Shown here: positions 592 through 42,956 of the stretch, piece after piece | Layout: each line of letters begins with the position of its first letter | Position numbering within the stretch: the first letter of the stretch is position 1 | Virus record (IMG/VR): IMGVR_UViG_3300035180_001778 | Span: 124,001-188,000 of that record | Length of the DNA stretch: 64,000 nt | Direction: 5' to 3' (one strand) | Position numbers and translations under genes: made by a program | The notes under the pieces: model-generated | Databases searched by the model: none | Told to the model about the DNA's origin: nothing | Seen by the model: the letters and a program-made list of their open reading frames with translations, nothing else

Positions 592-768
592 TCAGCTCCC
601 GTACGTCAGGCGTCGAACCTTACGTTGCAGAGCAGACAGCTCCTTCTCGGAAGCCTCGATGGTCAACTTGATGACCTCTCGCATGTGCTTCTGGATCCCA
701 AGCTCCTGACGGTGCTCCCAGCCGGGAGCCGGGGCGGGAGTTTCTTCCGGTGCTTTTTCGTCAGACAT
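592..768 (-). CDS. Small hypothetical protein (58 aa)
   Basis: MSDEKAPEETPAPAPGWEHRQELGIQKHMREVIKLTIEASEKELSALQRKVRRLTYGS; ATG overlaps the TGA of the upstream gene (TGATG). Confidence 0.7.
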   Translation of the reverse strand: MSDEKAPEETPAPAPGWEHRQELGIQKHMREVIKLTIEASEKELSALQRKVRRLTYGS

Positions 769-16440: not shown

Positions 16441-19400
16441 TCAGCGGTTCTTCTTCGCGCCTTCGTTCTCGTAGAAGGTGTTCGAGGCCTCTGCTCGAAC
16501 CAACCGTTTGAGATCGCCGCGCAGCTCCAGGACGATCTTCTGCGTCCCCGAACCCCCACCCGCGGGGACGATCTTCTCCCCAACCCCAATCGAAGCCAGG
16601 CCTTCCCCCGGAGCGGGGCGAAGTTGAGCCATGCCGTTGGCCACGGCTGAGACAACGCCTCCTGTGGCGTTCGCCGAGAGCTGGGTGATGGCGGTGTCCG
16701 CTGTGATGCCCTGTCCGAGCTTGTCGGCGAGTGCAGCCCCAAGGCCCCGTCCGGAGATGCCCCCCTGGACAGCCTTGCTCACGGATTCCTGCTTCAGATC
16801 CTTGTAGAGGTAGTACTCGTAGAGCCCCTGACGGAGCGCTTCGAGGAACGAGTCCTCCATCTGCTGTCCCATCTTGTTCTTCAAGAAGGCCTTGTCGATG
16901 ACAATGCCCTGCTTGCGCAGCGTGTCCTGAGCCCCATCGAGACCCTTGATCACATGGTCTTGCTGGCCAGCCGTGGGGGCATCCTTCGGCAGCGGGGGAG
17001 CCCCAGGAGCAGCTCCTCCAGCCGCTCCCGGAGGAAGCGGAGGACCTGACACCCCAGGGGGCATAGCTTGAGGGGGTGCCTCTTGCGGGGCCGGACTGTC
17101 AGGGCTACTCGAAGGAGACGTAGAACCACCCGTCATGGCCTTGAGGTCGGGGAATATCTTGGCCAACTTGGTGGGGTCCATCTCCCAGCCGAGCTTGGCC
17201 ATGATCTTGTCCATGTCATCCTTGCTGAATTTGGACGTATCGATCGACCCGTCGAACCCCACGATACCTGCCTTGCCCTTCTTCTGGTTCATGAACTCTT
17301 GACGAGTGCCGGGGTCCAACTTCAGACGGTCTGCCTCCTTGTTGGCTGCATCGAGCTTGTCCTGTCCTCCGTAGAGTCCGCCTTCCCCCAAAGCATCAAT
17401 GACAGCCCGACGCATCTCTTGAGGGCTTGCGTTTTCCTGCATCTTCCGCTGGGCAGCCTGCCCGCTTTGACCTCCCTTGGTCATCGCGTCCACAATCTGC
17501 TTCATCCCCTGCGACTGCATCAGCTCGCCACGGAACTTGAACTCATCCCCACCAGAAGCTCCCAACGCCTTTTGGGTATCGGAATCCTTGCCCTCGCGGA
17601 CGGTTTTCGAGAGGTCCCGCTGCTTCCTCTTCTCGTCGTTGCCGAAGATTTTGGAGTCGACCAAGGCGTCCCAAATTCCGGTCAACACCGTGTAGATTTG
17701 ATTCATGATGAACTCGGCGACGTTGCCGATCTTGTCCATCAAGCTCGTCTGGAACTTGCCGGTCTCCTTGGCGTAATCGATCTGCTTCGCGCCATCCTTG
17801 AGGGCGTCCTGCTCCGACTGATCCAGGGTCGCCAAGATGTCGTCATAGCCCGCCGTGTCGATATCGGCCGCTGCCACTCCGGCCTTGTCGAGGCGCTTCA
17901 TTGCAGCGGCTTGCTTGTCCCCGCCAGCCTTGAGGTCCGCCTTCAGCTCGTCCCGCTGCTCGTCGATGGCCTCCTCGAACTTGGCCATCTGGGCGAGCTG
18001 GTCCTCACTGATCCCGTTCGCATCCGCAAGCATCTCGGTCCCGAGATCCCCACGCCGGTCCCGGAGCTTCCCCGACCCTCCGATGTTGAGCGCAGACTTC
18101 ATCGACTGAAGGGCTGCGCCAGGGCCGAGGTTGCGTCCCGCCACAGAGGATCCGAAGACCCCCTTCTTGTTGGCTTTGGCGTCCATCCGCATCTCGGAGA
18201 TGGCCTCATGAAGCGTCCCCTGAGCTTCCTTGGAGACCCCCTGCATGAGTTCCTTGATGGGCTTCGACATGAGGTCTTCGCGAGAATACCCAGCCTTCCC
18301 GCCGGCTTCCGCGATCTTCCCACTGACGTCCTTGGACTTACGGTCAAGGTCCTTCTCGACCATGCCGCCCATCTTGCCGCCTCCGAGGAGGTTCGTCTTG
18401 AGACGCTCGACGCGACCCATCCCCTTGAGGGCCTGCGTCGCCGTCTGCATGAACTTCTGGGCGTTCCTTGGGCTCATCACCTTGCCCAAGAGGCCGAGGA
18501 TCTTGACGGCGTCTTCCATCCGAGTGTTGTAGAGAGCCAGGTCCGCGGAGACTCCTCGGATGATCCCGAAGAACTTGTTGCTCGCGATCCCTCCGTCCTC
18601 CGCTGCCCTGCTCATCTGCGTGAAGTTCAGCTCGACGCTCTTGAGCCCCATCCCCATGTCCGTCATCATCTCCGCTTGGAGATTGCCGATGTCAGAGAGG
18701 CTCACGCCAAGATTCCGTGAGTAAGCCACTGCCATCTGGACAGTCGAGCCAAAGCTCTTCGCGTAGCCGGCTGCTTCTTTCGATGACTTCGACGTCGCCT
18801 CGAAGTCATCGTTGAGGCGGCGCAAAGAGACACCCTCGGCTGTGAGGGAGCTGAGGACAGCCTTGTGGGTATCCTTGTTGATACCCCACGACATGTTGTC
18901 GAGACTCGTCGCCTGGTCACGGATCTTCTTGAGGGTGTCCCCGAGTTCTCCTGCTCCGGCATTGACGTTGTTGAAGTTCGAGTAGAGGAAAGAAGCGGAT
19001 CCCGACGTGGCTAGGATTTCCTTGTTGAAGTCTTTCGCCGCTGCCTCTGCGTCCACGAAGAGCTTGACGAGACCCACCATGACGGTGCTCACGACGCCGA
19101 GAAGGGGCCCGAGCTTCGAGACGATGTCGAGGATGGGTGCGAGCCCACCGGCCAGCTTCCCGACCCCCTGCATGGCCCCGCCGCCAGCCACCTGAGCCGC
19201 GCCCCCGAGCTTGCCCATGATGCCGCCACGGGCCATGGACATCTTGCCCTTGGACATCATGGATGCGCCAGCTCGCTCGCCAAACTTGCCGCCGACCTTG
19301 GCAAGCCAAGACCCGCCCTTGAAGACGCCCTCGACGCCCTTCCCCAAGAGCTTCCCGCCAGACTCGAAAGCTCCGGGAAGGTCCTTCGAGATAAGGCGAT

Positions 19401-19878
19401 CGATGGGTTCGTACAGCTCTTGACCAGCTTCCTTCATCGCACCGACGAATTCATCCTTGTCAAAAACGATGCGCGTCTCCAGGTCCTCCTTGACCCGAGT
19501 CATGGTGTCGAGAGCCTTCTCCCGAGCATCCCGCAGCTTCTCCCAGTCCTTGATCTCCTTCTCGACGTTCTTGCGGCTATCCCCAGAAGCGGATGCCAAT
19601 TTACCCCGGCTCCGTTCAAGCTCGTGGTTGATGTCCGCGATCGAACGCTCCAGCTTGTTGTAGGACTTCGTGACGTCCTTGAGCATCGGGATGGCAGTAC
19701 GTCGAACGGTGACGTACTGGTGTGCGAACTTCTCGATGCCCTTGTTGAGCTTCTTCGCGCCCTTGTCGAGGTCGGTAGTTCGCGCCGAGATCGCCTTCTC
19801 CAGGCGGTCCATGTCGCGTTTTGCGTCTTTGGTATCGAGGTCTACTCGAAGCCCAAGAACTTCCAAGCTCGTTGCCAT
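16441..19878 (-). CDS. Tape measure protein
   Basis: 1145 aa, helical and A/G/K/M-rich with a hydrophobic segment; downstream of the tube and chaperones. Confidence 0.8.
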   Translation of the reverse strand: MATSLEVLGLRVDLDTKDAKRDMDRLEKAISARTTDLDKGAKKLNKGIEKFAHQYVTVRRTAIPMLKDVTKSYNKLERSIADINHELERSRGKLASASGDSRKNVEKEIKDWEKLRDAREKALDTMTRVKEDLETRIVFDKDEFVGAMKEAGQELYEPIDRLISKDLPGAFESGGKLLGKGVEGVFKGGSWLAKVGGKFGERAGASMMSKGKMSMARGGIMGKLGGAAQVAGGGAMQGVGKLAGGLAPILDIVSKLGPLLGVVSTVMVGLVKLFVDAEAAAKDFNKEILATSGSASFLYSNFNNVNAGAGELGDTLKKIRDQATSLDNMSWGINKDTHKAVLSSLTAEGVSLRRLNDDFEATSKSSKEAAGYAKSFGSTVQMAVAYSRNLGVSLSDIGNLQAEMMTDMGMGLKSVELNFTQMSRAAEDGGIASNKFFGIIRGVSADLALYNTRMEDAVKILGLLGKVMSPRNAQKFMQTATQALKGMGRVERLKTNLLGGGKMGGMVEKDLDRKSKDVSGKIAEAGGKAGYSREDLMSKPIKELMQGVSKEAQGTLHEAISEMRMDAKANKKGVFGSSVAGRNLGPGAALQSMKSALNIGGSGKLRDRRGDLGTEMLADANGISEDQLAQMAKFEEAIDEQRDELKADLKAGGDKQAAAMKRLDKAGVAAADIDTAGYDDILATLDQSEQDALKDGAKQIDYAKETGKFQTSLMDKIGNVAEFIMNQIYTVLTGIWDALVDSKIFGNDEKRKQRDLSKTVREGKDSDTQKALGASGGDEFKFRGELMQSQGMKQIVDAMTKGGQSGQAAQRKMQENASPQEMRRAVIDALGEGGLYGGQDKLDAANKEADRLKLDPGTRQEFMNQKKGKAGIVGFDGSIDTSKFSKDDMDKIMAKLGWEMDPTKLAKIFPDLKAMTGGSTSPSSSPDSPAPQEAPPQAMPPGVSGPPLPPGAAGGAAPGAPPLPKDAPTAGQQDHVIKGLDGAQDTLRKQGIVIDKAFLKNKMGQQMEDSFLEALRQGLYEYYLYKDLKQESVSKAVQGGISGRGLGAALADKLGQGITADTAITQLSANATGGVVSAVANGMAQLRPAPGEGLASIGVGEKIVPAGGGSGTQKIVLELRGDLKRLVRAEASNTFYENEGAKKNR

Positions 19879-27417: not shown

Positions 27418-27789
27418 TCAGACGCGGCTTTCCCAGTACTCGTCCTTCGACTCGTACAGCTCCATGTAATCCTCGATGCGATCCTTCAGGTTGTCCCGCC
27501 AGTTCTGGGTCCGCTTCACGATAGGCGCCTTGTCGGGCACCATCGGCCGGTCCTTGCCGAAGTTGTAGAACTGGACGCGGATCGCATCCTCCCCTTGGCC
27601 GGCTCCCATCCCCGAGTTGGGATGGATCGAAGTCCAGATCCGGATCCCGATGGTCTTCGCCTCGTTCAGGAAGAGGTTGATGACGACCTCCCCCCGGCTG
27701 GCCCCATGCTGAGGCCTGAGCGCCCGGAAGGCTCGCTTGAGGTACGTCTCCATCTCGGGCAACGTGATCTGCGTGAATTGAGCGGCCAT
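27418..27789 (-). CDS. Conserved phage hypothetical protein
   Basis: IRIWTSI...GEDAIRV...VKRTQNWRDNL; start overlaps the helicase stop. Confidence 0.7.
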   Translation of the reverse strand: MAAQFTQITLPEMETYLKRAFRALRPQHGASRGEVVINLFLNEAKTIGIRIWTSIHPNSGMGAGQGEDAIRVQFYNFGKDRPMVPDKAPIVKRTQNWRDNLKDRIEDYMELYESKDEYWESRV

Positions 27790-30700
27790 CACGCCCTCCG
27801 ATCGTACGAGGTGTCAACCCCGCCGGCTGTCATGAAGTAAGAAGCCATGTCCTCGAAGGGCGGGGGCCCATGATCCCCGAAGTCCCCCTCATCCTCAGCC
27901 GTCTTCGGAGTACCCACTTCCGCGGGCAGAGGAACGTCCTTCTCGACGTTCTCCCCCGGCTTGAGGCCTGCCTCGAAGACGAACCGTGAAGGTGCTTTGG
28001 CACAAACCACGGTGAGGTTCTTCGCGGCCCGGGTGAGAGCGACGTAGGCGAGATTCCGCTCCGCTTCGAGCTTCCTCAGCTCCTCTTCCGGATCCGGCGG
28101 GGGCTCATCCTTCTTGGGCTTCTTCTCGACCGGGAAGATACCCGCCGGCATGCACACGAAGACGTTCGGCCACTCGGCCCCCTTCACGCTGTGGACCGTG
28201 GAAAGGACCATGCACCGCGGACGCTCTTCCCGCTGCTCCGGCGGGAGCTTCTTCTGATCCAGAGCCCACTTCTTGAGGTCGACTCGAAGTGTCTTCGAGG
28301 CATCCGAGTAGCGCTCCAGCTTCTTGATGAAGCCCAGAGCCGTCGTCGGGTCGTGACCCAAGTCGTGGTCCTGCGCGTTCGGCTGTGCGATCTGGTAGAG
28401 GAACTGCACAGCTCCAAGCCCCTTGGCAGGGTTCTCCGGAGCGGGAGGTGCCGAAGGATCCCCAGGCTCTCCCTCCGTCTTGGGGAGCATGAGGTTGCCT
28501 TCGTCATCGACGACAGGCTTGACCGAGTCCGGCTCTTCCTCTTCCTCGGCGTCTTCGCTCCCATCCGAGTAGAGGGACATGTCATTCGAGATATGCTCTC
28601 GAAGAGTGACGGTCTTTCGGGTGTCCTCCCCCGTCCGGTTGTTGCGGTAGCCCGTCGTCGCCTTGACGTCGTCGAGGATGATCTTGAAAACATCCTCGAC
28701 GGGCATCGACGTGTCGTTGATGGTCTTCTTGAGCTTCGCGACCTGAGCCCCCATTTCGAGGAGGGTCTCCGTCATCTCGTCGACAGACTTCCGCCAGAGC
28801 CAATCCCCCGTGGCCATCAGCTTGTTCTTGTACGGCTGCTTGAGGGCTTCGGCGAGCTGGCGAGCGTAAACCCTCTTGGTGATCACCTCGAAGGGGTTGA
28901 GCGACTTCACGTCCATCCCGTCCCCACGAGCGATGTCCTGGAGAGCCTCCTTGACGATCTCGGCCACCTTGTCAGTCGAGAGGTAGAGACCACGATCCGG
29001 CTTCGTCAGGCTCGACGCCAACGAGAGCTGCATCTTCTCGAAGTTGGTCCCGCCCGCGAGGTCGAGGTAGCCAAGCACAGCCTTGGACTCAGGGGCTTCC
29101 AGGAAGCTCGACCCACCCACACGGGTGTACGGGATGCCCTCGATGATACAGGCCGTCTCGTAGTCGTTCAGCTCGTTGTTTGTACGAGCGAGAACAGCGT
29201 AGTCCTTCTCCTCGCTCGTCGGATTCGCACGAAGCTCCTTCGTGATCCGCTGAAGGGTATAGATGGCCCCAGAGGCGTTGTCCCCCGGCACCGTGACCTC
29301 GATCGAAGCTTCCTTGCGAGCCTTCTTCGGGTTCGCGCGAGCCTCCATCGGGATCTGGTTCGTGTTGTGGGCGACGAGCTTGTTGGCGCACTCGACGATC
29401 TCCGGAGCGCAACGGTAGTTCGTCTTGATCATCCGAGTCTTCCAGCCCTCCTTGCCGTTGAGGGCGGTGAAGAGATCCGGGCGAGCCCCGCGGAACTGGT
29501 AGATGGCCTGCTTGTCGTCACCGACCATCCAGAGGGACTTGCCGTCCTTGCCATCCGTGATGTGCTGAGACATCAGGTCGAAGACTTGGTGCTGAACCGT
29601 GTTGAGGTCCTGGCACTCGTCCACGAGGATGTGGTCGAACATGTTCTGAACCAAGGTGCGAGCCTTGGGGTCACGAACGAGGATGTCCCGGTAGACCTTG
29701 ACCATGTCGTCGAGATCCCCGAGTCGCTCCTTGCCCGGACGGAATGTGTCCATCCACTTGTCGGCGGTCTTGCTCTGCGAGCACGGCGGACGCCAGCCCG
29801 GGATGTCCCCCTTGAGACCCGAGCCGATGTGATACCAGATCGCCGCCTTGATCTCCTCTTTCGAGGTGGCATTGGCGAGCGCTTGCTCCGGAGAGACGTC
29901 GTTGCCCTTCCAGACGTTGATGAGCAAGCCAGCCTTCTTGGCGCTGGGAATGTCTTCCAACGCCTTCGGTTGGACCTTGTAGTAGGACGCCAGAGCCACA
30001 GGCCCACATTCCGTCCAGACACCCTTGATGGCCAGCGTGTGGTTGATGGGCTTCGGGCCACGCTTGAACTTCTGCCCCGGCTCCGGGTTGGCGATGAGCC
30101 GCTCCTCAGAGAAGAGCTTCTGCTCCTCTGGAGTACCGAAGGCCGGGATGTTGGACCCTCGATCGCCCACGATGAATCGCATGAAGAGCGAGTGCATCGT
30201 CCCCACGGACATCTGCTTCATCTCGTTCTCGCCGCACTTCTTGGCGATCTTGTCCCGCAGCTCGTTCGCCGCCTTCCGGTTGAACGAGCACGCCAGGATG
30301 CGGCCGGGCTTGACCCCGCGATCCTTGATGAGGTACTGAATTCGAGCGACCAGAGTCGTCGACTTCCCAGCCCCAGCTCCCGCGGCAATGAGAACCTTGC
30401 CGTCCGTGAGAGCTGCTCCCCGTTGCTCCGGGTCGAGGGAACGGAGGGGCTCCGGGACATTCTTCAGGTCTTCGGGGTCTGCCATGGCCGCTGCTACAGT
30501 TGCAGCCGCGATGCCAACAACCTGAGATTTCGTGACGGGAGCATCAGGCTCGTTTTTGGCGTCCAGAGACTTCAAGGCCGTCGCCTGAGCTTCCTCCTGA
30601 ACCCGCGAGATGATCTTGTCCTGGCGGTCTGTGGTGCCCTTCGTCTCCTCGGACGCAGGGTCGGCAGCTTCCGCCTTCATACGCTCGACGGCCAGCTCCT

Positions 30701-31301
30701 TGGACGCGTCGACCCGCCCGCCAGTTTGGCTAACCGCTGTCACAGGTGTCGGAGGAACCCCCGACCCTGCCAATTTGGCAGCCTCGTCGATCCAGTTCCG
30801 GATCCGGATGTTCTTGACGGGGATGACCGCGAACTTGTCGAGGGCGGCATCTGCATCGTCCACCATCGAGGCCGCGATAGCCGCTCGAACCTCTTGGAGG
30901 GCCTTGTTCGTGGAGAACACCGCCCGCATTGTCGAGGCACCACCCCGAGAGAGCAGGGTACGAATCTGGAGAGCCCGGCGAGCGGCCCCGTCCGGGGTCG
31001 GCCTCAGCCGAAGAGCCTTCTCCAGCATCTTCTTGTGGGTGTCCGACGGGAGGTTGGCTTTCATGAAGCCAGCGATGACCTCGCCGTGGAGCATGTCCGC
31101 CATTCGGAGCAGCTTCAGCCCGTTGGCCGTCATCTCGTCATGGGGGAGCCCAACCTCCTCCATGTACCGCATGTAGGTATCGAGGGCGAGAAGGAAGACC
31201 ACGTATTCGGCGATCTGGAGTTCGCCGAACGTCTTGTCGACCTCGACAACCTCTTCATCAGCGGCCTGACGACGGTCGTAGATCATCTGGGTGTCGTGCA
31301 T
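27789..31301 (-). CDS. UvrD/PcrA/Rep-family SF1 helicase with ~285-aa N-terminal extension
   Basis: Walker A AGAGAGKS, VDECQD, VGDDKQAIYQFRGA, NYRC, STVHSVKGAEW, ERNLAYVALTRA. Confidence 0.95.
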   Translation of the reverse strand: MHDTQMIYDRRQAADEEVVEVDKTFGELQIAEYVVFLLALDTYMRYMEEVGLPHDEMTANGLKLLRMADMLHGEVIAGFMKANLPSDTHKKMLEKALRLRPTPDGAARRALQIRTLLSRGGASTMRAVFSTNKALQEVRAAIAASMVDDADAALDKFAVIPVKNIRIRNWIDEAAKLAGSGVPPTPVTAVSQTGGRVDASKELAVERMKAEAADPASEETKGTTDRQDKIISRVQEEAQATALKSLDAKNEPDAPVTKSQVVGIAAATVAAAMADPEDLKNVPEPLRSLDPEQRGAALTDGKVLIAAGAGAGKSTTLVARIQYLIKDRGVKPGRILACSFNRKAANELRDKIAKKCGENEMKQMSVGTMHSLFMRFIVGDRGSNIPAFGTPEEQKLFSEERLIANPEPGQKFKRGPKPINHTLAIKGVWTECGPVALASYYKVQPKALEDIPSAKKAGLLINVWKGNDVSPEQALANATSKEEIKAAIWYHIGSGLKGDIPGWRPPCSQSKTADKWMDTFRPGKERLGDLDDMVKVYRDILVRDPKARTLVQNMFDHILVDECQDLNTVQHQVFDLMSQHITDGKDGKSLWMVGDDKQAIYQFRGARPDLFTALNGKEGWKTRMIKTNYRCAPEIVECANKLVAHNTNQIPMEARANPKKARKEASIEVTVPGDNASGAIYTLQRITKELRANPTSEEKDYAVLARTNNELNDYETACIIEGIPYTRVGGSSFLEAPESKAVLGYLDLAGGTNFEKMQLSLASSLTKPDRGLYLSTDKVAEIVKEALQDIARGDGMDVKSLNPFEVITKRVYARQLAEALKQPYKNKLMATGDWLWRKSVDEMTETLLEMGAQVAKLKKTINDTSMPVEDVFKIILDDVKATTGYRNNRTGEDTRKTVTLREHISNDMSLYSDGSEDAEEEEEPDSVKPVVDDEGNLMLPKTEGEPGDPSAPPAPENPAKGLGAVQFLYQIAQPNAQDHDLGHDPTTALGFIKKLERYSDASKTLRVDLKKWALDQKKLPPEQREERPRCMVLSTVHSVKGAEWPNVFVCMPAGIFPVEKKPKKDEPPPDPEEELRKLEAERNLAYVALTRAAKNLTVVCAKAPSRFVFEAGLKPGENVEKDVPLPAEVGTPKTAEDEGDFGDHGPPPFEDMASYFMTAGGVDTSYDRRA

Positions 31302-31329: not shown

Positions 31330-32172
31330 TCAAGGATCAGCTTGATGTACCAACCATGCGCCCTGGGTGGGAGCGCGATCTGTGAAGTTGGCGAGCCTCA
31401 AGAACTCACCCACGTTCTTTTCCAGGAGAAGCTTCTGTCCGAGCATCTGGTCGTAGATAGGCATCGACTCCTTCGAGATAATGCAATACCTCCGCGTGGG
31501 CTCCCCATTCTCAATGAGGTCCACGTTGTGGGCGTACCCCTTCCGAACCCGATAGATTCTACGGTCTTCCCCACGAACGTGGAATGCTCCCGTCGTCATC
31601 AACTCCTCTTGCTGGTCATCTGTGAGGAACTGCTCCAGGAGAACCCGAGATTTGGCGAGAGCTTCGGTCTCCTGTTGTCTCTCCAGCTCCAGAGCTTCGC
31701 GGTTGGCGATCCTCGCCGCGAACATGGCTCGAATCACAGGGTGCAAGCCCTCAAAGTTCTCCCCCCGAGGTTCCCTGCACACTTGGAGGATCAGGTCCTC
31801 AGCCCTCGCGCCATCAAGGGCATAGGCGTTTCGGCAGCTATTCCCAGGCAAAAAACCCAAACCGCAACAAGTCCACAACCCGAGAGGGGGCAAGTCGCAG
31901 ATAGTTCGGATTGAGAAAATAAGGCTCCCATCCACCCCCAAAGCATCAAGGGTGAGAAGCCAGTCAGGCAGAAGTCCGGCGAGATATCGCACGGTGAGGT
32001 CTACGCCGAGGGGAATGATGACGCGAGCTGTGTGGGCTCTTCGAGGCTCCCACCAAGATGTGGGAGGATCCGCTTCGTTGAAGTTGAGGGTGTGGTATCG
32101 CCCTCCAATCTCTGTGTCGTAGATCGGAATCTCACCATCCCCCAAGTGATGTATCAAGAGGGAGGTGATCAT
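31330..32172 (-). CDS. Hypothetical protein, candidate partner of the GG-ending protein
   Basis: Likely start MITSLL; C-terminal 'LLEQFLT..Q...G.FHVRG...YRV...YC...MP.YDQML.QKLLLE..F...AN' domain. Confidence 0.65.
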   Translation of the reverse strand: MITSLLIHHLGDGEIPIYDTEIGGRYHTLNFNEADPPTSWWEPRRAHTARVIIPLGVDLTVRYLAGLLPDWLLTLDALGVDGSLIFSIRTICDLPPLGLWTCCGLGFLPGNSCRNAYALDGARAEDLILQVCREPRGENFEGLHPVIRAMFAARIANREALELERQQETEALAKSRVLLEQFLTDDQQEELMTTGAFHVRGEDRRIYRVRKGYAHNVDLIENGEPTRRYCIISKESMPIYDQMLGQKLLLEKNVGEFLRLANFTDRAPTQGAWLVHQADP

Positions 32173-32173
32173 C

Positions 32174-32662
32174 TCACCCCCCGGTCGCGTGAGGGCACAC
32201 GCCCCCATTCAAATGGGACCCCAGGTTACAAGAATGACAAGCCACCCGGAAAATGGCAGGCCATCCTTGGCTCTTGGCCCAGTGGTGAACGTGGCCCCCA
32301 ATCTCCCGACGATGTTCGTTACCCTTCCCATGAAGGTGATCCAGACCCAAGAGCATTGTCACGTTCTCCCCACAGCAATAGCAAGCCGGATTTTCGCCTC
32401 CGTAGACGTGGAGAGCCTCCAGAAAAACCTCACGACGTCTACGGTTCGTGTTCTCTCGTTTTTGTTGGAGATGTGCCTCTCTATTTCGAGCCTGCCAATC
32501 AGAACCATCCGAGGGGCTGAAGGGTCCGATCGTCCCTTCACGCCTACCTTTCATGTAATTCTGGGCATAGTCCGAGTTTGCTTCTCGCCAATCCTTGCCA
32601 GCTTTGAGAAGCTGGTCTTTGTGTGCCTGGTAGTATGCCTGATTGTCAGCTCGTTTCGCCAT
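32174..32662 (-). CDS. HNH-type endonuclease
   Basis: Start MAKRAD; CYCCGE...LDHLHG.G..H...RVACHSCN. Confidence 0.8.
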   Translation of the reverse strand: MAKRADNQAYYQAHKDQLLKAGKDWREANSDYAQNYMKGRREGTIGPFSPSDGSDWQARNREAHLQQKRENTNRRRREVFLEALHVYGGENPACYCCGENVTMLLGLDHLHGKGNEHRREIGGHVHHWAKSQGWPAIFRVACHSCNLGSHLNGGVCPHATGG

Positions 32663-32688
32663 ACCCAGGCAGGCGTATCGATTCCTTA

Positions 32689-33042
32689 TTAACCCCCCGT
32701 CATCGGCGGAACAAGGAGAACCTGGGGAGCCGTGGCATCGAACTCCTTGATCTGCTCGCCCTCGGTCGCCGGAACCTCTTCGGCGTTCTTGGGCTTGACG
32801 AACCGCATCCGACCCGCGTCCGCGTCGAAGTTCTCCAGCTCTTCCCCCTTGCGGACCATCTTCTTCTCGTCCTTCGTGAAGCTCACGAGACGGAAGGCGA
32901 GGTAGCCCTTGCTTGTCAGGTCGACGAAGAGCGCCCGAGCGGTCTCGACCTCTTCCGGGTTGGTCGGGTCCCACGAATGCTTGGTGTCGCCCGCCTTGCC
33001 CATGATGGCAAATTGGTGCGTCGAGGTTGCGAGATCAGTCAT
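32689..33042 (-). CDS. Small protein ending in di-Gly (PPMTGG)
   Basis: GDTKHSWDP...ARALF..L..KGY.AF...EFD....LLVPPMTGG; GGTGTA-N10-ATG start. Confidence 0.75.
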   Translation of the reverse strand: MTDLATSTHQFAIMGKAGDTKHSWDPTNPEEVETARALFVDLTSKGYLAFRLVSFTKDEKKMVRKGEELENFDADAGRMRFVKPKNAEEVPATEGEQIKEFDATAPQVLLVPPMTGG

Positions 33043-33062: not shown

Positions 33063-33560
33063 TCACTCGTAGCCCTCGATGACCCACTTCTGGTATTCCT
33101 TTTCCAACCAGGAATCCAGAGGCCCCGAGTGTCGGAAGAGATACTCCCTGTAGGTCGTCCCCGTCCGATAGTCCCGAGTCCCCGGCGGAGCCACTCGACC
33201 CGTTGCATCGTACTCGACGCCGACGTTGAAGAAGTCCGCCAGCTCTTCCTCGATGCGACCTTGAGCCCAGCGGGCAAAGGGACCGATCGGCCCATGGCGG
33301 AAAGCCACCCGGCTCGGCTGGAGTGCCACCACGAACCCCACAGCCTCATCCTGGCAGAAGAAGGGAAGCTTGCGAGTCTCTTCCGTGGAGACCGCTGTGC
33401 CCGGGAGGAAGACCATCCAGACGGGACCCCCATCCTCGAAGGACGTGAGGACGATTTTCCAGTCTGTATTCAACGTCCGAGCAACCGCAGCCGTGAGGGT
33501 TGCCTCGAAGGCCTCTTCAGTCAGCTCGCCAGGGAGGTCGATGTAGCCGTAGTTCGCCAT
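33063..33560 (-). CDS. Hypothetical protein
   Basis: 165 aa; GGTGTA-N10-ATG start. Confidence 0.7.
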   Translation of the reverse strand: MANYGYIDLPGELTEEAFEATLTAAVARTLNTDWKIVLTSFEDGGPVWMVFLPGTAVSTEETRKLPFFCQDEAVGFVVALQPSRVAFRHGPIGPFARWAQGRIEEELADFFNVGVEYDATGRVAPPGTRDYRTGTTYREYLFRHSGPLDSWLEKEYQKWVIEGYE

Positions 33561-34062: not shown

Positions 34063-34797
34063 CTAGGCGAAGAGATTGTGGAGAATCGTCGCCCCGATGT
34101 GGCGGTTCTCGACCTCGATGGTGTTGGCCTCCTCACGCGCGAACTTCACGGCGATCCGGAGCTTCGAGACGCGGTCCTTCAGCACGTTGACCCGAGTCGC
34201 CGTGAGGGCCCCCGAGCGCTTGACGACCGTGTACTGTCCGACCGCCTTGTCCTCGTGGAAAATCTCGGTCTGCGCCGGATGGTACTGGGTGGGCTCCGCC
34301 TTCGTGATGACGGTGGGCGTCTTCCGCGTCCGCTGCGTGATGGCCGGAGCCGTGGCGAAGCAGGCCTGGTTCTCGTCGTAGGTCCACGACTCGGCCGGGT
34401 CGAGCGTCGGGAGCGAGCCGATGAACGTGGTGAGGTCGTCGAGCTGGTGCTCCAGGAAGAGCAGCACGCCGACGGGGACATCCGCGAGGATGACCTTCCC
34501 ATCCACGACGATGTTCGCTCGCGCGATGGTGTTCCCCCACTCCTTCGTGGCCGTGATGTCGAAGGCCTCCGTGAGGACCTTCACCGTGTGCTCGATGGCA
34601 TCCGCGGCCTTGAGCTGGACGTGCTTCAGCTCCGGCGGGAGCCGCTCTTCCTGCGTGTCTGAGAAGGGCGCGTAGGTCCGCGAGAACCCTTCGAGCTGCG
34701 CCGGCTTCTTCAGCTCCTTGTGGTAGGTCTTCAGCTCGTCGTACGCCTTCGACTTGAGACCCTTTTCGACCGCGATGATCTGGCAAAGCTTGCCCAT
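34063..34797 (-). CDS. Conserved protein of unknown function (244 aa), adjacent to the tRNA-mimic RNA
   Basis: MGKLCQIIAVEKG...SRTY.P...LPPE...DVPV..LLFLE.QL...LPTLDP...HPAQ...SGA...AVKFAREEAN; recalled as a family seen in Actinobacteria and other bacteria; very GC3-rich. Confidence 0.85.
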   Translation of the reverse strand: MGKLCQIIAVEKGLKSKAYDELKTYHKELKKPAQLEGFSRTYAPFSDTQEERLPPELKHVQLKAADAIEHTVKVLTEAFDITATKEWGNTIARANIVVDGKVILADVPVGVLLFLEHQLDDLTTFIGSLPTLDPAESWTYDENQACFATAPAITQRTRKTPTVITKAEPTQYHPAQTEIFHEDKAVGQYTVVKRSGALTATRVNVLKDRVSKLRIAVKFAREEANTIEVENRHIGATILHNLFA

Positions 34798-38297: not shown

Positions 38298-41200
38298 CTA
38301 AATGCGTGCGCGAAGGTTAAATGAGAGGACCAAGAAGAGCAGCGGGAAGACCGGCTGGTAGAACGCCTGGAACCGAAGGATGGTCGGGTCGTTCGGATCG
38401 ATGGCCGATGCGATGCCCGAGAAGGCGCCCACGATCTCCGCCTGGACGAGCTGCTTGAAGAGGCCCGTCATCGAGACGTTGACCTCGTTGGTCCGGCTCG
38501 CGAGGAACTTGGAACCGACGAAGGAATCGAGGACGATGCGGCTCTGCTGTTGCACATAGTCGGCGATCTGAGTGACCGTCGGGAGGCGCGTCAGCGGAGA
38601 CGACATGTTGGTGGTGAGCCCCTGCCGGATGCGAACAAGCGGCTGGAGGTCCTCCAAGAGCGTGATCCCCGCGGCGGCCGTCTGGTTGGCCTCGACGGGA
38701 TCCATGATGCGCGGGATGCGCGTGAAGTTGACGATGCGACGCCGAGTCCAGGGCGTCGCCACATCGACCGAGGGAGACACGACAGCTCCAGCGACGGCCG
38801 CTGCAAAGAACGTCCCATCCACGAGGGAGTCGAACGTCTGCCCCAGAGCATCCGAGAGCGTGATGACAGCCGAGTCCGGGTAGAACATGGCCATCCGGTT
38901 CGAGTTCAGGCTCCGAGCGATGGTCTGCGCGTTGGTCGGGCTCGTCCCCGAAGCAAAGCCGCAGAAGCCCATCCGCTCCGCCTGGTTGCGGATGTGAGAC
39001 TGTGTCTCGACGTGCTGGGTGAGCCGCGAGTAGACCGCCGTCGAGGTCGCCAGAGGCACGAGGATGTCGGGCTTGACGTTGCCGGGCAGAGGCGTCTTCA
39101 GCTCATCGATCGCGTCGAGGAAGGAGACGTCCGTTGCCTGAGCGGTGTTCGCCGCCTTCATGACCTGCTTGATCCCGACGAGGAGAGCCCCGTTGGTGAT
39201 CGCAAGATAAGCCGCGAGGCTCACCCGGTTCTCCGCACTGACCAACCCGAAGTTCTGCTCGATCGTCTTGATCGTGCGGAAGATGCGGGTCGAGAAGTCC
39301 TGCTTGAGGAAATTGTAGGTGATGTAGTAGAAGTCACCCACCTTCGGCTCGACCCCACCCGGGTTGAACGTCTGGACGGTGGCCGTGTCGTTCACCGCGA
39401 CGCCGACCGTGTTGGCGACCCCCAGCTCCAACCCAGCGATTGCCAGGAAGGGGCGTGAGGGGTCGACCGCGAACGTCGGGGTGACGAGGAGCGTGAAAGT
39501 CCCCGCCGCATCGTACCCACCCGTCGTTGCGGGAAGGACCGTGAAGCGAAGCCCCGTCTGCGCGTCCGTGTACGTCTGGCCGGGGATGCCCGTACCAGCC
39601 GAACCAGAGGCGTTGTTCGAGGAGACCACGAAGTTGTCCTGCGCGTCTTCGCCGTTGTCCCCGTCCACCCCAGCCGTGAGCCCGATGCCCGTCGTCGCGT
39701 TGAACGCGGAGTTGGCCACCGTGTTGAAGACGATGCTGCTCGAAGCCGCTCCGACCGTCAGGGACTCGAAGGTGATGTAGTTCGAGCCGTTGATGGTATC
39801 GACGTACGCAACCCCATCGGTGAGGAAGCCCGCGGTGGCGAGGAGCGCGTCCACAACCTCCTGAGCCGACACGAGGGTCTGTGAGCCCTGCGCGTTCTGT
39901 GCGAACCCGAGAACCACATTGGCCGTCCCATCGAGGATGAGAACCGACGACTGCGGGTCGTTCGTCGAGGAGGTGAGGCGGAGCTTGTCGAGGTTGATCC
40001 CCGTACCCGCCGAAGCACGTCCCGTGGCCACAGCGTTGATGGCCGAGACCACCGCAGAGGTCGCAACCGTGGCACCCGCGGGGAGCGTCACCAAGTACTG
40101 CGCCCCGTTGACGCGGAACTTGAAGGTGTCGTTCACGCCAGCGGTGATGTTGAACGGACCGACCAGAGACCCGAGGAGCGTTGCGGGCTTGTTGATGGCC
40201 CCCGTCGTCCCATGCGAAGACTGGAAGGTCGTGAAGCCGAGGAGCGTCTCTGCCGTCCCCTGGGAAACCATGACCGTCGAGATGTCATCGAACCCGCCAG
40301 GAAGAGCCCCGGGGGTCGTGTCGCTCTTGACCACGAAGAAGACGTCACCCGTCGAGCCACCGATCTGGTGGAAGCTCGCGAGCGTGTTGGGAGCCGTTCC
40401 CGAGAACGGAGCGGTCGCATCGATGACAGCGTTGATGTCCGCGACGAGCTGCGTCGGAGTCCGGTAACCGACCGTGAGGGGGACGTTGATGAGGCCGTTG
40501 CCGCCCGTCATCCCCACCACAACGAAGCCAGCGTTGGCCACCGTCTCGGTGATGGCAGCATTGCCCACCGTTCCAGTTGCCCCGTTGACGAGAGCGACCT
40601 TGGTCGAACCTCCGATGGAGGCCGTGATGGCAAGCCCAGCTCCGACACCGTTGATCGCAGAGATCATCGCGTCGCGAACCGTGCCCACCGAATCGAGCGA
40701 GGTGAAGGCGACCGCAACATTCCCAGAGGCAACGCCACCCCCAGAATCGAACTCGAAGATCGACGGAGGGTTCACCCCATCGTCAAGAGTGAACGTCTCC
40801 CCATCGACGAGGAGGGAGCCCGCCACCGTCGTGATGAGTCCGCTCGCCGCCAGAACCCCCGCGTTGATCGAGAGGTTGAGGACGTTGGCCGGGGAAGCCG
40901 GGATGAGGATCTTGCCCGAGTTGCCGCCCGACTGAACCGGCACGACATGGCCCGAGACCAGGAAGGCCGGAGCTGCCGACGCAAGGTTCGTCGCCTGGGT
41001 GTTCCCGTTGATCCCCATCGACCAGGTGGCCGAGGAAGGAGCGTAGAACGAGTAGGGCTCCGCGAGGTTGTTCGTGAAGGCCGCGTTCGTTGCCGCAGCG
41101 GATCCGAAGGTCACGGTGACCGTCTCGACAACGGGAGTACCCGTTCCCGAGTGGAAGGCATCCGGAACCGTCTCGACCCCACGGGGCCACTGAACCGTCT

Positions 41201-42956
41201 CGCTGAGAGACGACTTCGAGCCGAAGCGGACCTGAAAGAGGTTCGTGTTCTGCTGAACCGAGAAGACCTCGTACTGCCCCATCCCAACGGCTCCAGGAAC
41301 CGTGCAAGTGAGGATGTAGGTGTCGTCCACGATCCGGTTGTAGTTGAACGTCGCGTAGGCGTTCCAGTCCGGGGGGACAGCATCCCGAAGACGAAGCAGA
41401 CGCGAGGCACCGTCCACCGTGAGAACCTTCACGGCTGCTCGACCCAAGGCATCCCGGAGAGTCCGGCCCACGAAGACCTGGATCAGATCCGGGCGGTTCG
41501 TGATGAGGTCCTGGCGGTTGTTGGTGATCGAGGCGTAGAGCGAGTTGCCGAGAGGCGTCGACCGACCGTTCCCCGTGGTGGGGATCTCAGGGAGACGGAA
41601 GTCCGTCGTCGAGACCTTCGCCGGGAGAACGGACGTGTCAGTCACCCTCGCGCAAGTCGCGAGGTAGAGCTTCTCATCGACGAGCGACCCGACGATCTGA
41701 GACTCGTTGAACGGCGTGGACCCGGGGGACGTCTTCGTGGAAGCGACCACGAAGCTCGTTCCCCAGTGTATGATCGAGACATCCGCCGAAGGATTCGAGA
41801 CAACGAAGTCCTGCCCCTGAATGAAGTCCGAACGACCGTTCGAGATACCGCAGCGGGCAACCGTGGTGACGAACGTGTTGGGGAGGTAGTCGAACGTGTC
41901 CTGCCAGGTGTTGGCCCAGTATTGAACCGTGACCACAGCTCCGCGAGCGGGAGGCGTGGCAAGGGTCACAACACCGTTGGTCCCATCGACAGACGTCGGG
42001 ATGACCTGAGCACCGTTGACCTTGACGACCACCTTGGAGGGGTCCGTCGTGGTGATTCCACCGCTCGTCCCATCGACGATGGGACGCTGGAAGACACGGA
42101 AGCTCAGGTTCCTCGACGTCTTCGTGTTCGCCAGGAAGCCGAGGGGACCGTTGGCCGAACCAGACCCGATCTCCAGCGAGACAGGAGAGGTGAGCGCGAC
42201 GTGCTTGAGCCCCTGGTTGTCCGTCGACACCGCTGTCTGAAGGTTGGGGATGATCGCTGCATCGATCTGGCTCTTGACGTTGGACGCCGTGAGGGAGCCC
42301 GCGGTGAGCGTAACCGTGTACGACGTGCCGCCGACCTTGACGACGAAGCTGTCATTGGAGCCGGTCGTGACGAGGAAGGGCTCGAACCCAGGGGACGTCA
42401 GAATGGCGTCCAGGTTCGTCACCTGATCCGAGACGTCGTCCGTGAATGCCGTGTCTCCCCGGTGGAAGAAGTAGGTCACTCGAACGACGTCCGTCGGCTG
42501 AGGCGGAATCTGAAGCGTGATGAGGCCCTTGGCACCCTGGACTGCCCCGAGAGCAACAGGCAGCCCGTTGACCGTGATCGAGGAGATGTCCTTGGTGGCG
42601 TTCGAGACCCGACCAAGGCCGCTGCCATCGACGATGGGGAAGTTGCGGACGCGGAACTGAGTCCGGGTCCCATCCTGCGCCCCGAGGATGAGGTTCTGGG
42701 GGTTCGTCGCATCGGCGACCCATGCCAGGCTCGGGTCCTCATTGACGATCTGCTGATCGATGGAAGCGCTGCTCCCTCGGACCAGTTCCAGGTCGTCTTG
42801 CACCAGTTCTTCTTGACCCACCCCGATGATCGCGGGGATCCGCAACCCACCCAGGATGTTGGTCACGTTCGCGTCTGCGAACGTCTGGGTGTAGACACCG
42901 GGGTTCATTTCCGGCGTGGGGGTGAACGTTTGGAACGGTCCGTTTCCAGTGGCCAT
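38298..42956 (-). CDS. Tail sheath protein with large inserted domains (1552 aa)
   Basis: N-terminal PGVYTQT..PAIIGVG; C-terminal sheath core (AAAVAG...AGITLLE...RIRQGLTT...ADYV...YQPVFPL). Confidence 0.9.
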   Translation of the reverse strand: MATGNGPFQTFTPTPEMNPGVYTQTFADANVTNILGGLRIPAIIGVGQEELVQDDLELVRGSSASIDQQIVNEDPSLAWVADATNPQNLILGAQDGTRTQFRVRNFPIVDGSGLGRVSNATKDISSITVNGLPVALGAVQGAKGLITLQIPPQPTDVVRVTYFFHRGDTAFTDDVSDQVTNLDAILTSPGFEPFLVTTGSNDSFVVKVGGTSYTVTLTAGSLTASNVKSQIDAAIIPNLQTAVSTDNQGLKHVALTSPVSLEIGSGSANGPLGFLANTKTSRNLSFRVFQRPIVDGTSGGITTTDPSKVVVKVNGAQVIPTSVDGTNGVVTLATPPARGAVVTVQYWANTWQDTFDYLPNTFVTTVARCGISNGRSDFIQGQDFVVSNPSADVSIIHWGTSFVVASTKTSPGSTPFNESQIVGSLVDEKLYLATCARVTDTSVLPAKVSTTDFRLPEIPTTGNGRSTPLGNSLYASITNNRQDLITNRPDLIQVFVGRTLRDALGRAAVKVLTVDGASRLLRLRDAVPPDWNAYATFNYNRIVDDTYILTCTVPGAVGMGQYEVFSVQQNTNLFQVRFGSKSSLSETVQWPRGVETVPDAFHSGTGTPVVETVTVTFGSAAATNAAFTNNLAEPYSFYAPSSATWSMGINGNTQATNLASAAPAFLVSGHVVPVQSGGNSGKILIPASPANVLNLSINAGVLAASGLITTVAGSLLVDGETFTLDDGVNPPSIFEFDSGGGVASGNVAVAFTSLDSVGTVRDAMISAINGVGAGLAITASIGGSTKVALVNGATGTVGNAAITETVANAGFVVVGMTGGNGLINVPLTVGYRTPTQLVADINAVIDATAPFSGTAPNTLASFHQIGGSTGDVFFVVKSDTTPGALPGGFDDISTVMVSQGTAETLLGFTTFQSSHGTTGAINKPATLLGSLVGPFNITAGVNDTFKFRVNGAQYLVTLPAGATVATSAVVSAINAVATGRASAGTGINLDKLRLTSSTNDPQSSVLILDGTANVVLGFAQNAQGSQTLVSAQEVVDALLATAGFLTDGVAYVDTINGSNYITFESLTVGAASSSIVFNTVANSAFNATTGIGLTAGVDGDNGEDAQDNFVVSSNNASGSAGTGIPGQTYTDAQTGLRFTVLPATTGGYDAAGTFTLLVTPTFAVDPSRPFLAIAGLELGVANTVGVAVNDTATVQTFNPGGVEPKVGDFYYITYNFLKQDFSTRIFRTIKTIEQNFGLVSAENRVSLAAYLAITNGALLVGIKQVMKAANTAQATDVSFLDAIDELKTPLPGNVKPDILVPLATSTAVYSRLTQHVETQSHIRNQAERMGFCGFASGTSPTNAQTIARSLNSNRMAMFYPDSAVITLSDALGQTFDSLVDGTFFAAAVAGAVVSPSVDVATPWTRRRIVNFTRIPRIMDPVEANQTAAAGITLLEDLQPLVRIRQGLTTNMSSPLTRLPTVTQIADYVQQQSRIVLDSFVGSKFLASRTNEVNVSMTGLFKQLVQAEIVGAFSGIASAIDPNDPTILRFQAFYQPVFPLLFLVLSFNLRARI

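Follow-up and report, generated by a model that had tools for sequence, protein, structure and literature searches.

The 64,000-nucleotide stretch analysed here (the window; positions 124,001 to 188,000 of IMG/VR record IMGVR_UViG_3300035180_001778, from a huge uncultured phage) carries three consecutive genes on the minus strand that were the focus of this study. The ORF at 32689–33042 (−) encodes a 117-residue protein (P0001) that ends in LLVPPMTGG, with the Gly116–Gly117 codons at 32692–32697 and the stop codon at 32689–32691. The ORF at 31330–32172 (−) encodes a 280-residue protein (P0002) with Y229–C230 in its C-terminal domain, and its start at 32172 is confirmed by the orthologue in a 91%-identical relative (L003). 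Between the two lies a gene for a 162-residue HNH endonuclease at 32174–32662 (−), which matches phrog_2255 at 4.5e-5 and is 44% identical to the annotated HNH of Streptomyces phage Keanu (E 2e-19). The initial annotation had described a Gly-Gly-terminated small protein with an internal duplication and a candidate partner with a YC motif, separated by an HNH gene, and this description is confirmed. Directly downstream of the pair is a gene for a 1170-residue UvrD-like helicase at 27789–31301 (−), whose orthologue in L003 carries the UvrD-helicase, AAA_19 and UvrD_C families, and the same synteny is seen in a second related locus (L006). Directly upstream is a 165-residue gene at 33063–33560 (−), which has no family match but is conserved in L003 as P0015. 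No paralogue of either P0001 or P0002 exists in this phage.

The internal duplication in P0001 is significant. Residues K65–P84 (KGEELENFDADAGRMRFVKP, 32791–32850 (−)) align with residues E94–P113 (EGEQIKEFDATAPQVLLVPP, 32704–32763 (−)) at a BLOSUM62 local score of 44, which was reached by 0 of 5000 shuffles, and the family HMM also matches P0001 twice over model positions 64–85/89. The repeated unit is a predicted beta-hairpin. The first copy has lost the PPxGG tail while the second leads into the MTGG end, and short family members have only one such unit.

Alignment with L003 shows that the HNH gene is carried by a 511-bp inserted element (32172–32682 (−)), the ends of which are ambiguous by about 2 bp because GA is repeated at both junctions. 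In L003, which lacks the insertion, the DNA reads TAATAAGGATG from the stop of the small-protein gene to the start of the partner gene, so that the element lies precisely in a 5-bp spacer between otherwise contiguous genes and leaves both intact. A search of metagenome runs for a variant without the HNH gene, for which only contigs could be compared, found that all four runs holding this DNA carry the HNH form. No RNA run was found to hold the locus.

P0001 belongs to a large, unannotated and mostly viral family with 471 representatives at E≤1e-3. Of the 150 best representatives, 126 end exactly in GG, 13 more carry GG followed by an extension, and 9 end in xG. In the family alignment (A1), Gly117 is invariant and Gly116 is at least 90% conserved, although A1 left out the members without a GG end. 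The tail motif, PP(M/V/L)xGG, has the same pattern as bacterial MoaD tails, (F/I)PP(V/F)xGG, and hhalign against a MoaD/ThiS alignment places the C-terminal halves in register at P 3.7e-4, compared with 0.42 for the reversed control, although the match covers only the C-terminal 39 columns with a probability of 36%. Sequence searches otherwise gave no link to known families. Pfam returned no hit, including to ThiS, ubiquitin and related families, for P0001 or for the other 117 sequences of A1. Scans of both P0001 and P0002, and of their family alignments, against Pfam, PHROGs and PADLOC were blank, and a word search with P0001 found only itself. The ESM Atlas gave only unnamed clusters plus a weak ‘ThiS family’ lead at 0.76. 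GenBank phages contain the family in only two uncultured records, a scan of the genome contigs collection found no relative, and a degenerate DNA pattern returned 24 loci of which only one (L043) was real.

The structural model of P0001 (pLDDT 80) has a beta-beta-alpha-beta...beta layout, and nearly all top matches from two structural aligners are beta-grasp domains, including Ub, SUMO, UBX, MoaD, TtuB and CysO. However, the scores are low, with Foldseek E≥0.06 (nothing at E≤1e-3 against the PDB) and VIA-align Z≤5.3, where values of Z below 8 may reflect only a common arrangement.

To determine whether the two genes are associated elsewhere, related loci were searched with an HMM of the partner domain. 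In every untruncated locus the HMM hits the ORF beside the small-protein gene, these being Rctr197k, 17 distinct IMG/VR viral loci, 7 metagenome contigs, 1 Isosphaeraceae MAG and LR756511.1, so that the genes are linked in more than 25 loci. Lack of GG conservation and lack of linkage had been set beforehand as grounds for rejecting the initial annotation, and neither was found. No third conserved gene accompanies the pair. The neighbours are UvrD, RecA-like, 5′–3′ exonuclease and PDDEXK genes and small early genes. One related partner protein (P0008) is encoded two genes from a Multiubiquitin-domain protein (Pfam 27.1 bits, cut-off 24.5).

Residues 145–270 of P0002 (31363–31740 (−)) comprise a predicted long helix plus the conserved, compact C-terminal domain. 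Cys230 (31483–31485), Pro238 (31459–31461), Asp241 (31450–31452) and Asn262 (31387–31389) are invariant among aligned partners that are only 17–30% identical. Cys230 is invariant in alignments of 22 and of 20 partners and is kept in 28 of 29 further homologues. The domain model has pLDDT 84–98 over residues 160–265 and a predicted alpha-beta4-alpha-alpha topology, with a helix at 185–194, four strands over 196–230, and helices at 239–252 and 254–260, which places Cys230 at the end of strand 4. Most of the top 28 structural neighbours are E2, RWD or UEV domains, the best being Ubc9 (Z 4.7), RWD domains (Z 4.6, 4.5, 4.1), FANCL, UEV domains, a BubB complex (9eav) and E2S, while a second comparison gave the RWD domains of Knl1, Mad1 and Csm1. 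These matches are also weak (Z≤4.7, and Z≤3.0 in the second comparison), and Foldseek gave nothing on the whole model. No Pfam family was found for P0002, for the homologues P0006–P0010 or for about 50 further family members, and a PDB sequence-profile search was blank. A comparison by hhalign confined to four Cap2-type Prok-E2_B domains was negative (P 0.38). The sequence AHNV...YC in P0002 was first read as an E2 HPN...C motif, but this was rejected because neither the His nor the Asn is conserved at that position across the family. The N-terminal region of P0002 (residues 1–144, 31741–32172 (−)) is shared only with P0006–P0008 and its fold is not resolved by the model (pLDDT mostly below 65). 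It replaces the WxxW/Ser-Thr-rich repeats found in most partner proteins.

Prediction of a complex between P0001 and P0002 gave an ipSAE of 0.79 (runs of 0.80, 0.79 and 0.74), compared with 0.00 for the best of three controls. Partner pLDDT was at least 72 and the runs agree in at least 75% of contacts. The mark was reached by 58 of 80 solved complexes and by 2 of 110 mismatched pairs, although these counts hold only roughly because our own alignments were used, and the score is the model's own confidence. The predicted interface includes P0001 tail residues 111–117 and P0002 residues 230–238, 241, 244–253 and 260–262, which contain all four invariant residues, and the GG tail is placed on the Cys230 loop.

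A ThiF/JAB cluster, whose ThiF gene is G000:C1:258227–258886, lies about 100 kb away in the same phage and was considered as the source of a missing E1. However, ThiF was found in only 1 of 7 complete phage genomes that carry the pair, and the cluster is therefore not a general component. No E1 is linked to the pair and no deubiquitinase is next to it.

We propose, with the evidence about evenly balanced, that the two genes form one cognate module of uncultured, often huge, phages. In this view P0001 is a small ubiquitin-like beta-grasp protein whose tail copies that of the sulfur carrier MoaD, and P0002 ends in a coiled-coil helix followed by a UBC/RWD (E2-like) type domain on which P0001 docks, with its Gly-Gly tail along the Cys230–Pro238 loop. 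The most likely chemistry would begin with activation of the tail by an E1-type adenylating enzyme, usually the MoeB/ThiF-type enzyme of the host since most phages with the pair encode none, followed by passage of the tail to Cys230 as a thioester and then its transfer to targets chosen by the variable N-terminal part of the partner. The HNH gene is a later selfish insertion. The family features, the gene linkage and the insertion rest directly on sequence evidence, whereas the folds and binding mode are predictions from models, and adenylation, thioester formation and conjugation are inferred. The interpretation in the initial annotation, a minimal phage protein-conjugation pair, is partly supported. 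The Gly-Gly end is a hallmark of the family, the adjacency to proteins like the C-terminal domain of P0002 is real and near-universal, the cysteine of the YC motif is conserved, the HNH gene is a secondary insertion, and the fold and complex predictions fit a ubiquitin-like protein with an E2-like partner, but the E2 assignment rests on weak structural scores without sequence-profile support.

An unlikely but more far-reaching possibility is that this is the first ubiquitination-like system encoded by viruses of bacteria, in which a minimal pair borrows the host MoeB/ThiF-type E1, or works without a canonical E1, to tag host or phage proteins covalently, perhaps DNA-replication or repair factors given the gene neighbours, with the variable WxxW-repeat or globular N-terminal domains choosing the targets. 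Ubiquitin-like conjugation in bacteria has so far been described as a host weapon against phages (Bil, Bub and type II CBASS). Literature searches found nothing on a phage pair of this kind or on either protein, and on the phage side turned up only the tail-assembly TAPI domain. A widespread phage module with a GG-ended modifier and its own Cys-bearing E2-like partner, but no E1, would put such chemistry on the virus side, and would raise the question of whether housekeeping sulfur-carrier E1 enzymes can be hijacked for protein tagging. It would also provide a working annotation for two sizeable families of hypothetical viral proteins, of which P0001 and P0002 are small, soluble-looking candidates for biochemistry.

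Among the alternatives, the one that survives best, although it is unlikely, is a non-catalytic complex that mimics a ubiquitin-like protein with its E2 and traps or misdirects a host machine such as Bil, Bub, type II CBASS Cap2 or MoeB/ThiF. The pair is phage-encoded, mostly lacks an E1 of its own and sits among early or DNA-metabolism accessory genes, and the UBC superfold includes non-catalytic Ub binders (UEV, RWD) that are among the top matches. The phage ThiF matches PADLOC Cap2-type E1–E2 models only through its adenylation domain, showing that such host enzymes have compatible chemistry. However, a cysteine conserved at such low sequence identity, and placed by the model in the tail-binding loop, is more than a pure binder would need, neither protein matches any PADLOC defence model and no host defence context is known. 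Nothing found here speaks for or against the suggestion in the initial annotation of a decoy against bacterial ubiquitin-like defence. Still less likely is a sulfur-carrier relay, in which the small protein is adenylated and thiocarboxylated like MoaD, ThiS or TtuB and the partner cysteine acts as a persulfide or acceptor relay for thio-modification of nucleotides, tRNA or DNA during infection. The MoaD-like tail and its register, the fact that the highest sequence identities among the fold matches (14–18%) are to MoaD and Urm1-like proteins, and the location in DNA-metabolism modules are in agreement with this, but no sulfurtransferase, PP-loop ATPase, MoaE-like or rhodanese partner is conserved nearby, the predicted partner fold looks like E2/RWD rather than any known sulfur-transfer enzyme, and some members carry extensions after GG, which is typical of modifier precursors. 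Those extensions (13 of 150) and the predicted position of the tail on the cysteine loop could also suggest that the partner is a cysteine peptidase or transpeptidase that trims the small protein or removes it from targets, but this is very unlikely, since no conserved histidine accompanies the cysteine, most members including P0001 already end at GG, and no peptidase fold appears among the matches.

The bacterial Bil, Bub and type II CBASS (Cap2/Cap3) operons pair a small beta-grasp protein ending in glycine with an E2-fold protein, as is predicted for the phage pair from weak structural matches, but they are host anti-phage operons with an adjacent E1 and a peptidase, and Bub works through oxyester intermediates (bioRxiv 10.1101/2024.11.21.623953), whereas the phage pair consists of two genes with an invariant Cys and no sequence match to PADLOC or Prok-E2_B models. 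The MoaD/ThiS/Urm1 sulfur carriers, which act with MoeB/ThiF E1 enzymes, are similar to P0001 in size, in its beta-grasp-like model and in their nearly identical tail pattern, ...PP(V/M)xGG, but the conserved partner here is a predicted E2/RWD-like protein, not MoaE, ThiG or an E1, and the context is a phage DNA-metabolism module. The lambda/T1 tail assembly protein I (TAPI) also has a phage-encoded ThiS/MoaD-like domain with a conserved C-terminal glycine (Iyer et al. 2006, PMC1779556), but TAPI lies in the tail module beside the TAPK JAB/NlpC peptidase and carries a C-terminal extra domain, while the present family lies outside structural modules and pairs with a Cys-bearing, predicted E2/RWD-like domain. 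The coiled-coil plus RWD proteins Mad1, Csm1 and Knl1, together with UEV domains, are the recurrent fold neighbours of P0002 and share the architecture predicted for it, a long helix followed by a compact alpha-beta4-alpha domain, but they are non-catalytic eukaryotic scaffolds, whereas the phage family keeps a Cys at the predicted end of strand 4 and has a dedicated GG-ended partner. The intervening gene resembles the free-standing HNH homing endonucleases of phages in its HNH family matches and in its presence or absence between otherwise collinear relatives, and there is nothing unusual about it; it sits exactly in the spacer of the pair and supplies the new ribosome-binding stretch for the partner gene.

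The 350,469-bp IMG/VR virus record from which the window (bases 124001-188000) is taken is rated 73% complete by CheckV and represents a huge phage with a G+C content of about 60%. Nearly all genes in this stretch run on the minus strand, including three very long ORFs of 2091, 1552 and 1145 amino acids at 768-7043 (-), 38298-42956 (-) and 16441-19878 (-), respectively. The same DNA occurs in sediment and microbial-mat metagenomes, whereas no RNA run was found to hold it.

Four consecutive minus-strand genes are of interest. The first (33063-33560) encodes a 165-residue protein with no family match. It is followed by the gene for P0001 (32689-33042), a protein of 117 residues that ends in LLVPPMTGG immediately before the stop codon, by the gene for a 162-residue HNH endonuclease (32174-32662), which matches phrog_2255 at 4.5e-5 and is 44% identical to the HNH of Streptomyces phage Keanu, and by the gene for P0002 (31330-32172), a protein of 280 residues that contains a Tyr229-Cys230 pair. 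A gene for a UvrD-like helicase follows at 27789-31301. At 34063-34797 (-) a protein of 244 residues matches DUF7873 over its full length (E 1.3e-90), and it is conserved at the same relative position in a 275-kb relative (contig L003). The internal repeat in P0001 is significant, since K65-P84 aligns with E94-P113 at a score of 44, which 0 of 5000 shuffles reached, and the family profile matches P0001 twice over its last third. Hence, what the initial annotation had described from sequence alone, namely a 117-residue protein ending in Gly-Gly with an internal duplication, separated by an HNH gene from a candidate partner with a YC motif, holds in every detail.

The small protein belongs to a large, unnamed and mainly viral family. 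A word-index search recovered only P0001 itself, but an exhaustive phmmer search found 471 cluster representatives at E<=1e-3, most of which are 70-130 residues long. Of the 150 best, 126 end exactly in GG, 9 end in xG, and 13 carry GG followed by 1 to about 90 further residues, as ubiquitin-like precursors do. One representative (P0017), a metagenome protein of 6209 residues annotated as YD repeat-containing, contains six stretches that match the P0001 family domain (E 3.6e-17), so the fold is also used as an internal repeat and not only as a free GG-ended protein. The family consensus is ...VMGxxGDTKxxWDPxNxxEVxxARxxFxxLxxKGYxAFxV...GExIxEFDPxAxxIIxxPPxxGG. No Pfam or PHROGs model matches P0001 or the other 117 sequences of the family alignment (A1), and ESM Atlas clusters of the same shape are unnamed and mostly from Uroviricota. 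P0001 itself falls in a subgroup in which the last beta-hairpin unit is duplicated.

The AlphaFold model of P0001, built with 118 sequences, has a pLDDT of 80 and shows two strands, a helix, a strand and a final strand that leads into the tail, with the duplicated insert being of low confidence. No single structural match to this model is strong (Foldseek E>=0.06, VIA-align Z<=5.3). However, both lists consist almost wholly of beta-grasp domains, including UBX, ubiquitin, SUMO, NEDD8, ISG15, an archaeal ubiquitin, a bacterial Ubl, MoaD, TtuB and CysO. The tail pattern is the same as that in MoaD proteins taken from five bacterial genomes (...FFPPVTGG, ...IPPVSGG, ...LLPPFAGG), and a profile-profile comparison aligned the C-terminal 39 columns tail to tail with P 3.7e-4 and a probability of 36%, compared with P 0.42 for the reversed control. 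We therefore refer to the protein as ubiquitin-like with a MoaD-type tail, although this does not establish membership in the ThiS/MoaD family.

P0002 has close relatives (P0006, 91% identical; P0007, 48%; P0008, 38%) as well as more distant ones that match only its last 100 or so residues. In the 91% relative (L003) the orthologous Ubl gene is followed after 5 bp by the partner gene, and in a further related locus (L006) the gap is 12 bp. In Virus Rctr197k, a weak Ubl homologue that ends in PG (Rctr197k_113) is followed directly by Rctr197k_112, the C-terminal part of which matches P0002 residues 197-263. This pair (locus L001, KX853510.1 111685-123864) lies between two annotated phage CRISPR arrays and transposase-like genes, and a second, weaker paralogue of the partner domain is present at L001:8153-8992 (E 2.4e-4). 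An HMM of the partner's C-terminal domain was built and used to scan all ORFs of 30 loci. It hits the ORF beside the Ubl in every locus that is not cut off at the Ubl; the partner is usually directly downstream and once upstream, and in two loci a short gap or one small gene intervenes. The same holds in the one bacterial genome that carries the family, an Isosphaeraceae MAG, and in the 595-kb uncultured phage LR756511.1. Some huge phages have extra or possibly fused copies, with a 585-residue partner-like ORF overlapping a second Ubl-like ORF in locus L018 (2100-4213) and a second Ubl-like protein of 133 residues in locus L026 (5276-5677). Clustering of all neighbouring ORFs shows no third conserved gene. 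In a group of 89-kb phages the pair lies between RecA-like and 5'-3' exonuclease genes on one side and PDDEXK and caspase-like genes on the other; in complete members of this size a caspase-family peptidase (Peptidase_C14, 5e-24; L014:5457-6263, also L013:5371-6255) and a PDDEXK nuclease are found directly downstream of the pair. In the clade of the phage studied here the pair lies beside UvrD.

Across 22 partners that share 17-47% identity, apart from one 90% relative, only Cys230, Pro238, Asp241 and Asn262 are invariant, and a second alignment gives the same four residues. The cysteine is kept in 28 of 29 further homologues found by a profile word search, none of which has a Pfam domain. Most partners (among those in loci L009-L027 and P0170-P0193) begin, within their N-terminal 60-120 residues, with two to four WxxW motifs separated by Ser/Thr-rich stretches, a pattern that recalls short aromatic motifs that bind ubiquitin-like domains, followed by a charged helix and then the conserved domain. 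P0002 and its three close relatives lack this pattern and instead have a different N-terminal region of about 145 residues. The model of P0002 is poor for residues 1-140, but it is confident (pLDDT 84-98) for a long helix (145-182) and a compact domain comprising a helix (185-194), four strands between residues 196 and 230 with Cys230 at the end of the fourth, and two helices (239-252 and 254-260).

An exhaustive structural comparison of the modelled partner domain gave scores that are low but of one kind. The matches are Ubc9 (Z 4.7), four RWD domains (Z 4.6-3.6), kinetochore RWD proteins, a BRISC complex subunit, FANCL, the Citrobacter BubB complex, E2S, and the UEV domains of Tsg101, Vps23 and Vps37. 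A second comparison restricted to candidates from Foldseek again placed the RWD domains of Knl1, Mad1 and Csm1 on top, at Z<=3.0. The predicted alpha-beta4-alpha-alpha order, with the cysteine after strand 4, is the UBC core layout, and the long helix followed by the domain recalls coiled-coil RWD proteins. However, several points count against membership: the HPN motif is not conserved, no sequence library that was searched gave a match, and an hhalign comparison with four Cap2-type Prok-E2_B domains was negative. Thus, we describe the domain as having a predicted E2/RWD-like fold with an E2-like cysteine, rather than as a proven E2.

To investigate whether the two proteins bind, the complex of P0002 residues 145-280 with P0001 was predicted in one job using our own alignments. 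The ipSAE scores were 0.80, 0.79 and 0.74 (median 0.79), compared with 0.00 for the best of three controls, the partner pLDDT was at least 72, and the runs agree in at least 75% of their contacts. The mark was reached by 58 of 80 solved complexes and by 2 of 110 mismatched pairs, although these counts hold only roughly here because our own alignments were used. On P0002 the predicted interface contains residues 230-238, 241, 244-253 and 260-262, and so includes all four invariant residues, while on P0001 it contains the conserved Gly18-Asp19 turn, strand 48-55, part of the insert, and tail residues 109 and 111-117. These results, which represent the confidence of a model rather than a measurement, support a cognate pair in which the GG tail is laid along the cysteine loop.

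A potential source of activation was sought in the phage itself, which encodes a small E1-like protein of the ThiF family (219 residues; PF00899, 6.7e-28) about 100 kb from the pair. Together with it, within 258227-260319 of the phage record (G000:C1, outside the window; L033:6228-8320, minus strand), are a weak JAB-like gene (160 residues, HTHP...S..D) and a 105-residue ORF ending in ...RPKTPFGDVD that could be another ubiquitin-like precursor, and an HNH-like gene lies between ThiF and the rest, as in the pair described here. This may be a separate E1/JAB/Ubl triad, or the E1 for P0001. However, ThiF was found in only 3 of 18 virus records that carry the pair and in only 1 of 7 records rated 100% complete, and it is never adjacent to the pair. 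The module therefore works, as a rule, without a phage E1. Given the MoaD-like tail, the simplest inference is that it uses a host enzyme of the MoeB/ThiF type.

Alignment with L003 shows that the HNH gene is contained in a clean 511-bp insertion. L003 reads GGTTAATAAGGATGATCACC from the Ubl stop through the partner start, whereas in the window the element lies between ...TAATAAGGA and TGATCACC and ends in GGGGGGTGAGA. Both flanking genes are intact, and all four metagenome runs that hold this DNA carry the HNH form. The gene is an ordinary selfish homing-type insertion and is not part of the module.

We propose, with moderate confidence at most, that the two proteins form a phage Ubl/E2-like module in which the tail is activated by an E1, passed to Cys230 and then to targets. 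The family features, the linkage of the two genes and the insertion are established by the sequence analysis, the two folds and the mode of binding are predictions from models, and the activation of the tail and its passage to Cys230 and to targets are inferred. The suggestion in the initial annotation of a minimal phage protein-conjugation pair is partly supported, whereas nothing found here speaks for or against its alternative, a decoy against bacterial ubiquitin-like defence. Of the alternatives, a non-catalytic decoy or inhibitor of host E1/E2 machinery is possible but unlikely, a sulfur-carrier relay is more doubtful still, and a Ubl-processing peptidase is very improbable. Literature searches recovered only the host defence systems (Bil, Bub and CBASS-II), the lambda/T1 TAPI tail-assembly Ubl (PMC1779556) and the Bub oxyester mechanism (bioRxiv 10.1101/2024.11.21.623953), and nothing on a phage Ubl/E2-like pair. 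A ubiquitin-like modifier with an E2-like partner is in itself a known kind of combination, but the setting here is unusual in that the pair is virus-encoded, consists of two genes and lacks an E1. The family is almost absent from cultured phages, and a BFVD fold match to an uncharacterised protein of Agrobacterium phage Atu_ph07 (E 0.023) is no more than a possible lead.

One independent hint supports ubiquitin-type biology. In contigs L004 and L005 a P0002-like partner (P0008) is not preceded by this Ubl family, and two genes upstream of it (L004:3021-3473 and L005:673-1125) lies a protein with the Pfam Multiubiquitin domain (PF14452, 4.9e-6), at 27.1 bits against a cut-off of 24.5. In this contig the P0001-type Ubl is missing, and an unrelated Pro-rich protein of 107 residues sits in its place.
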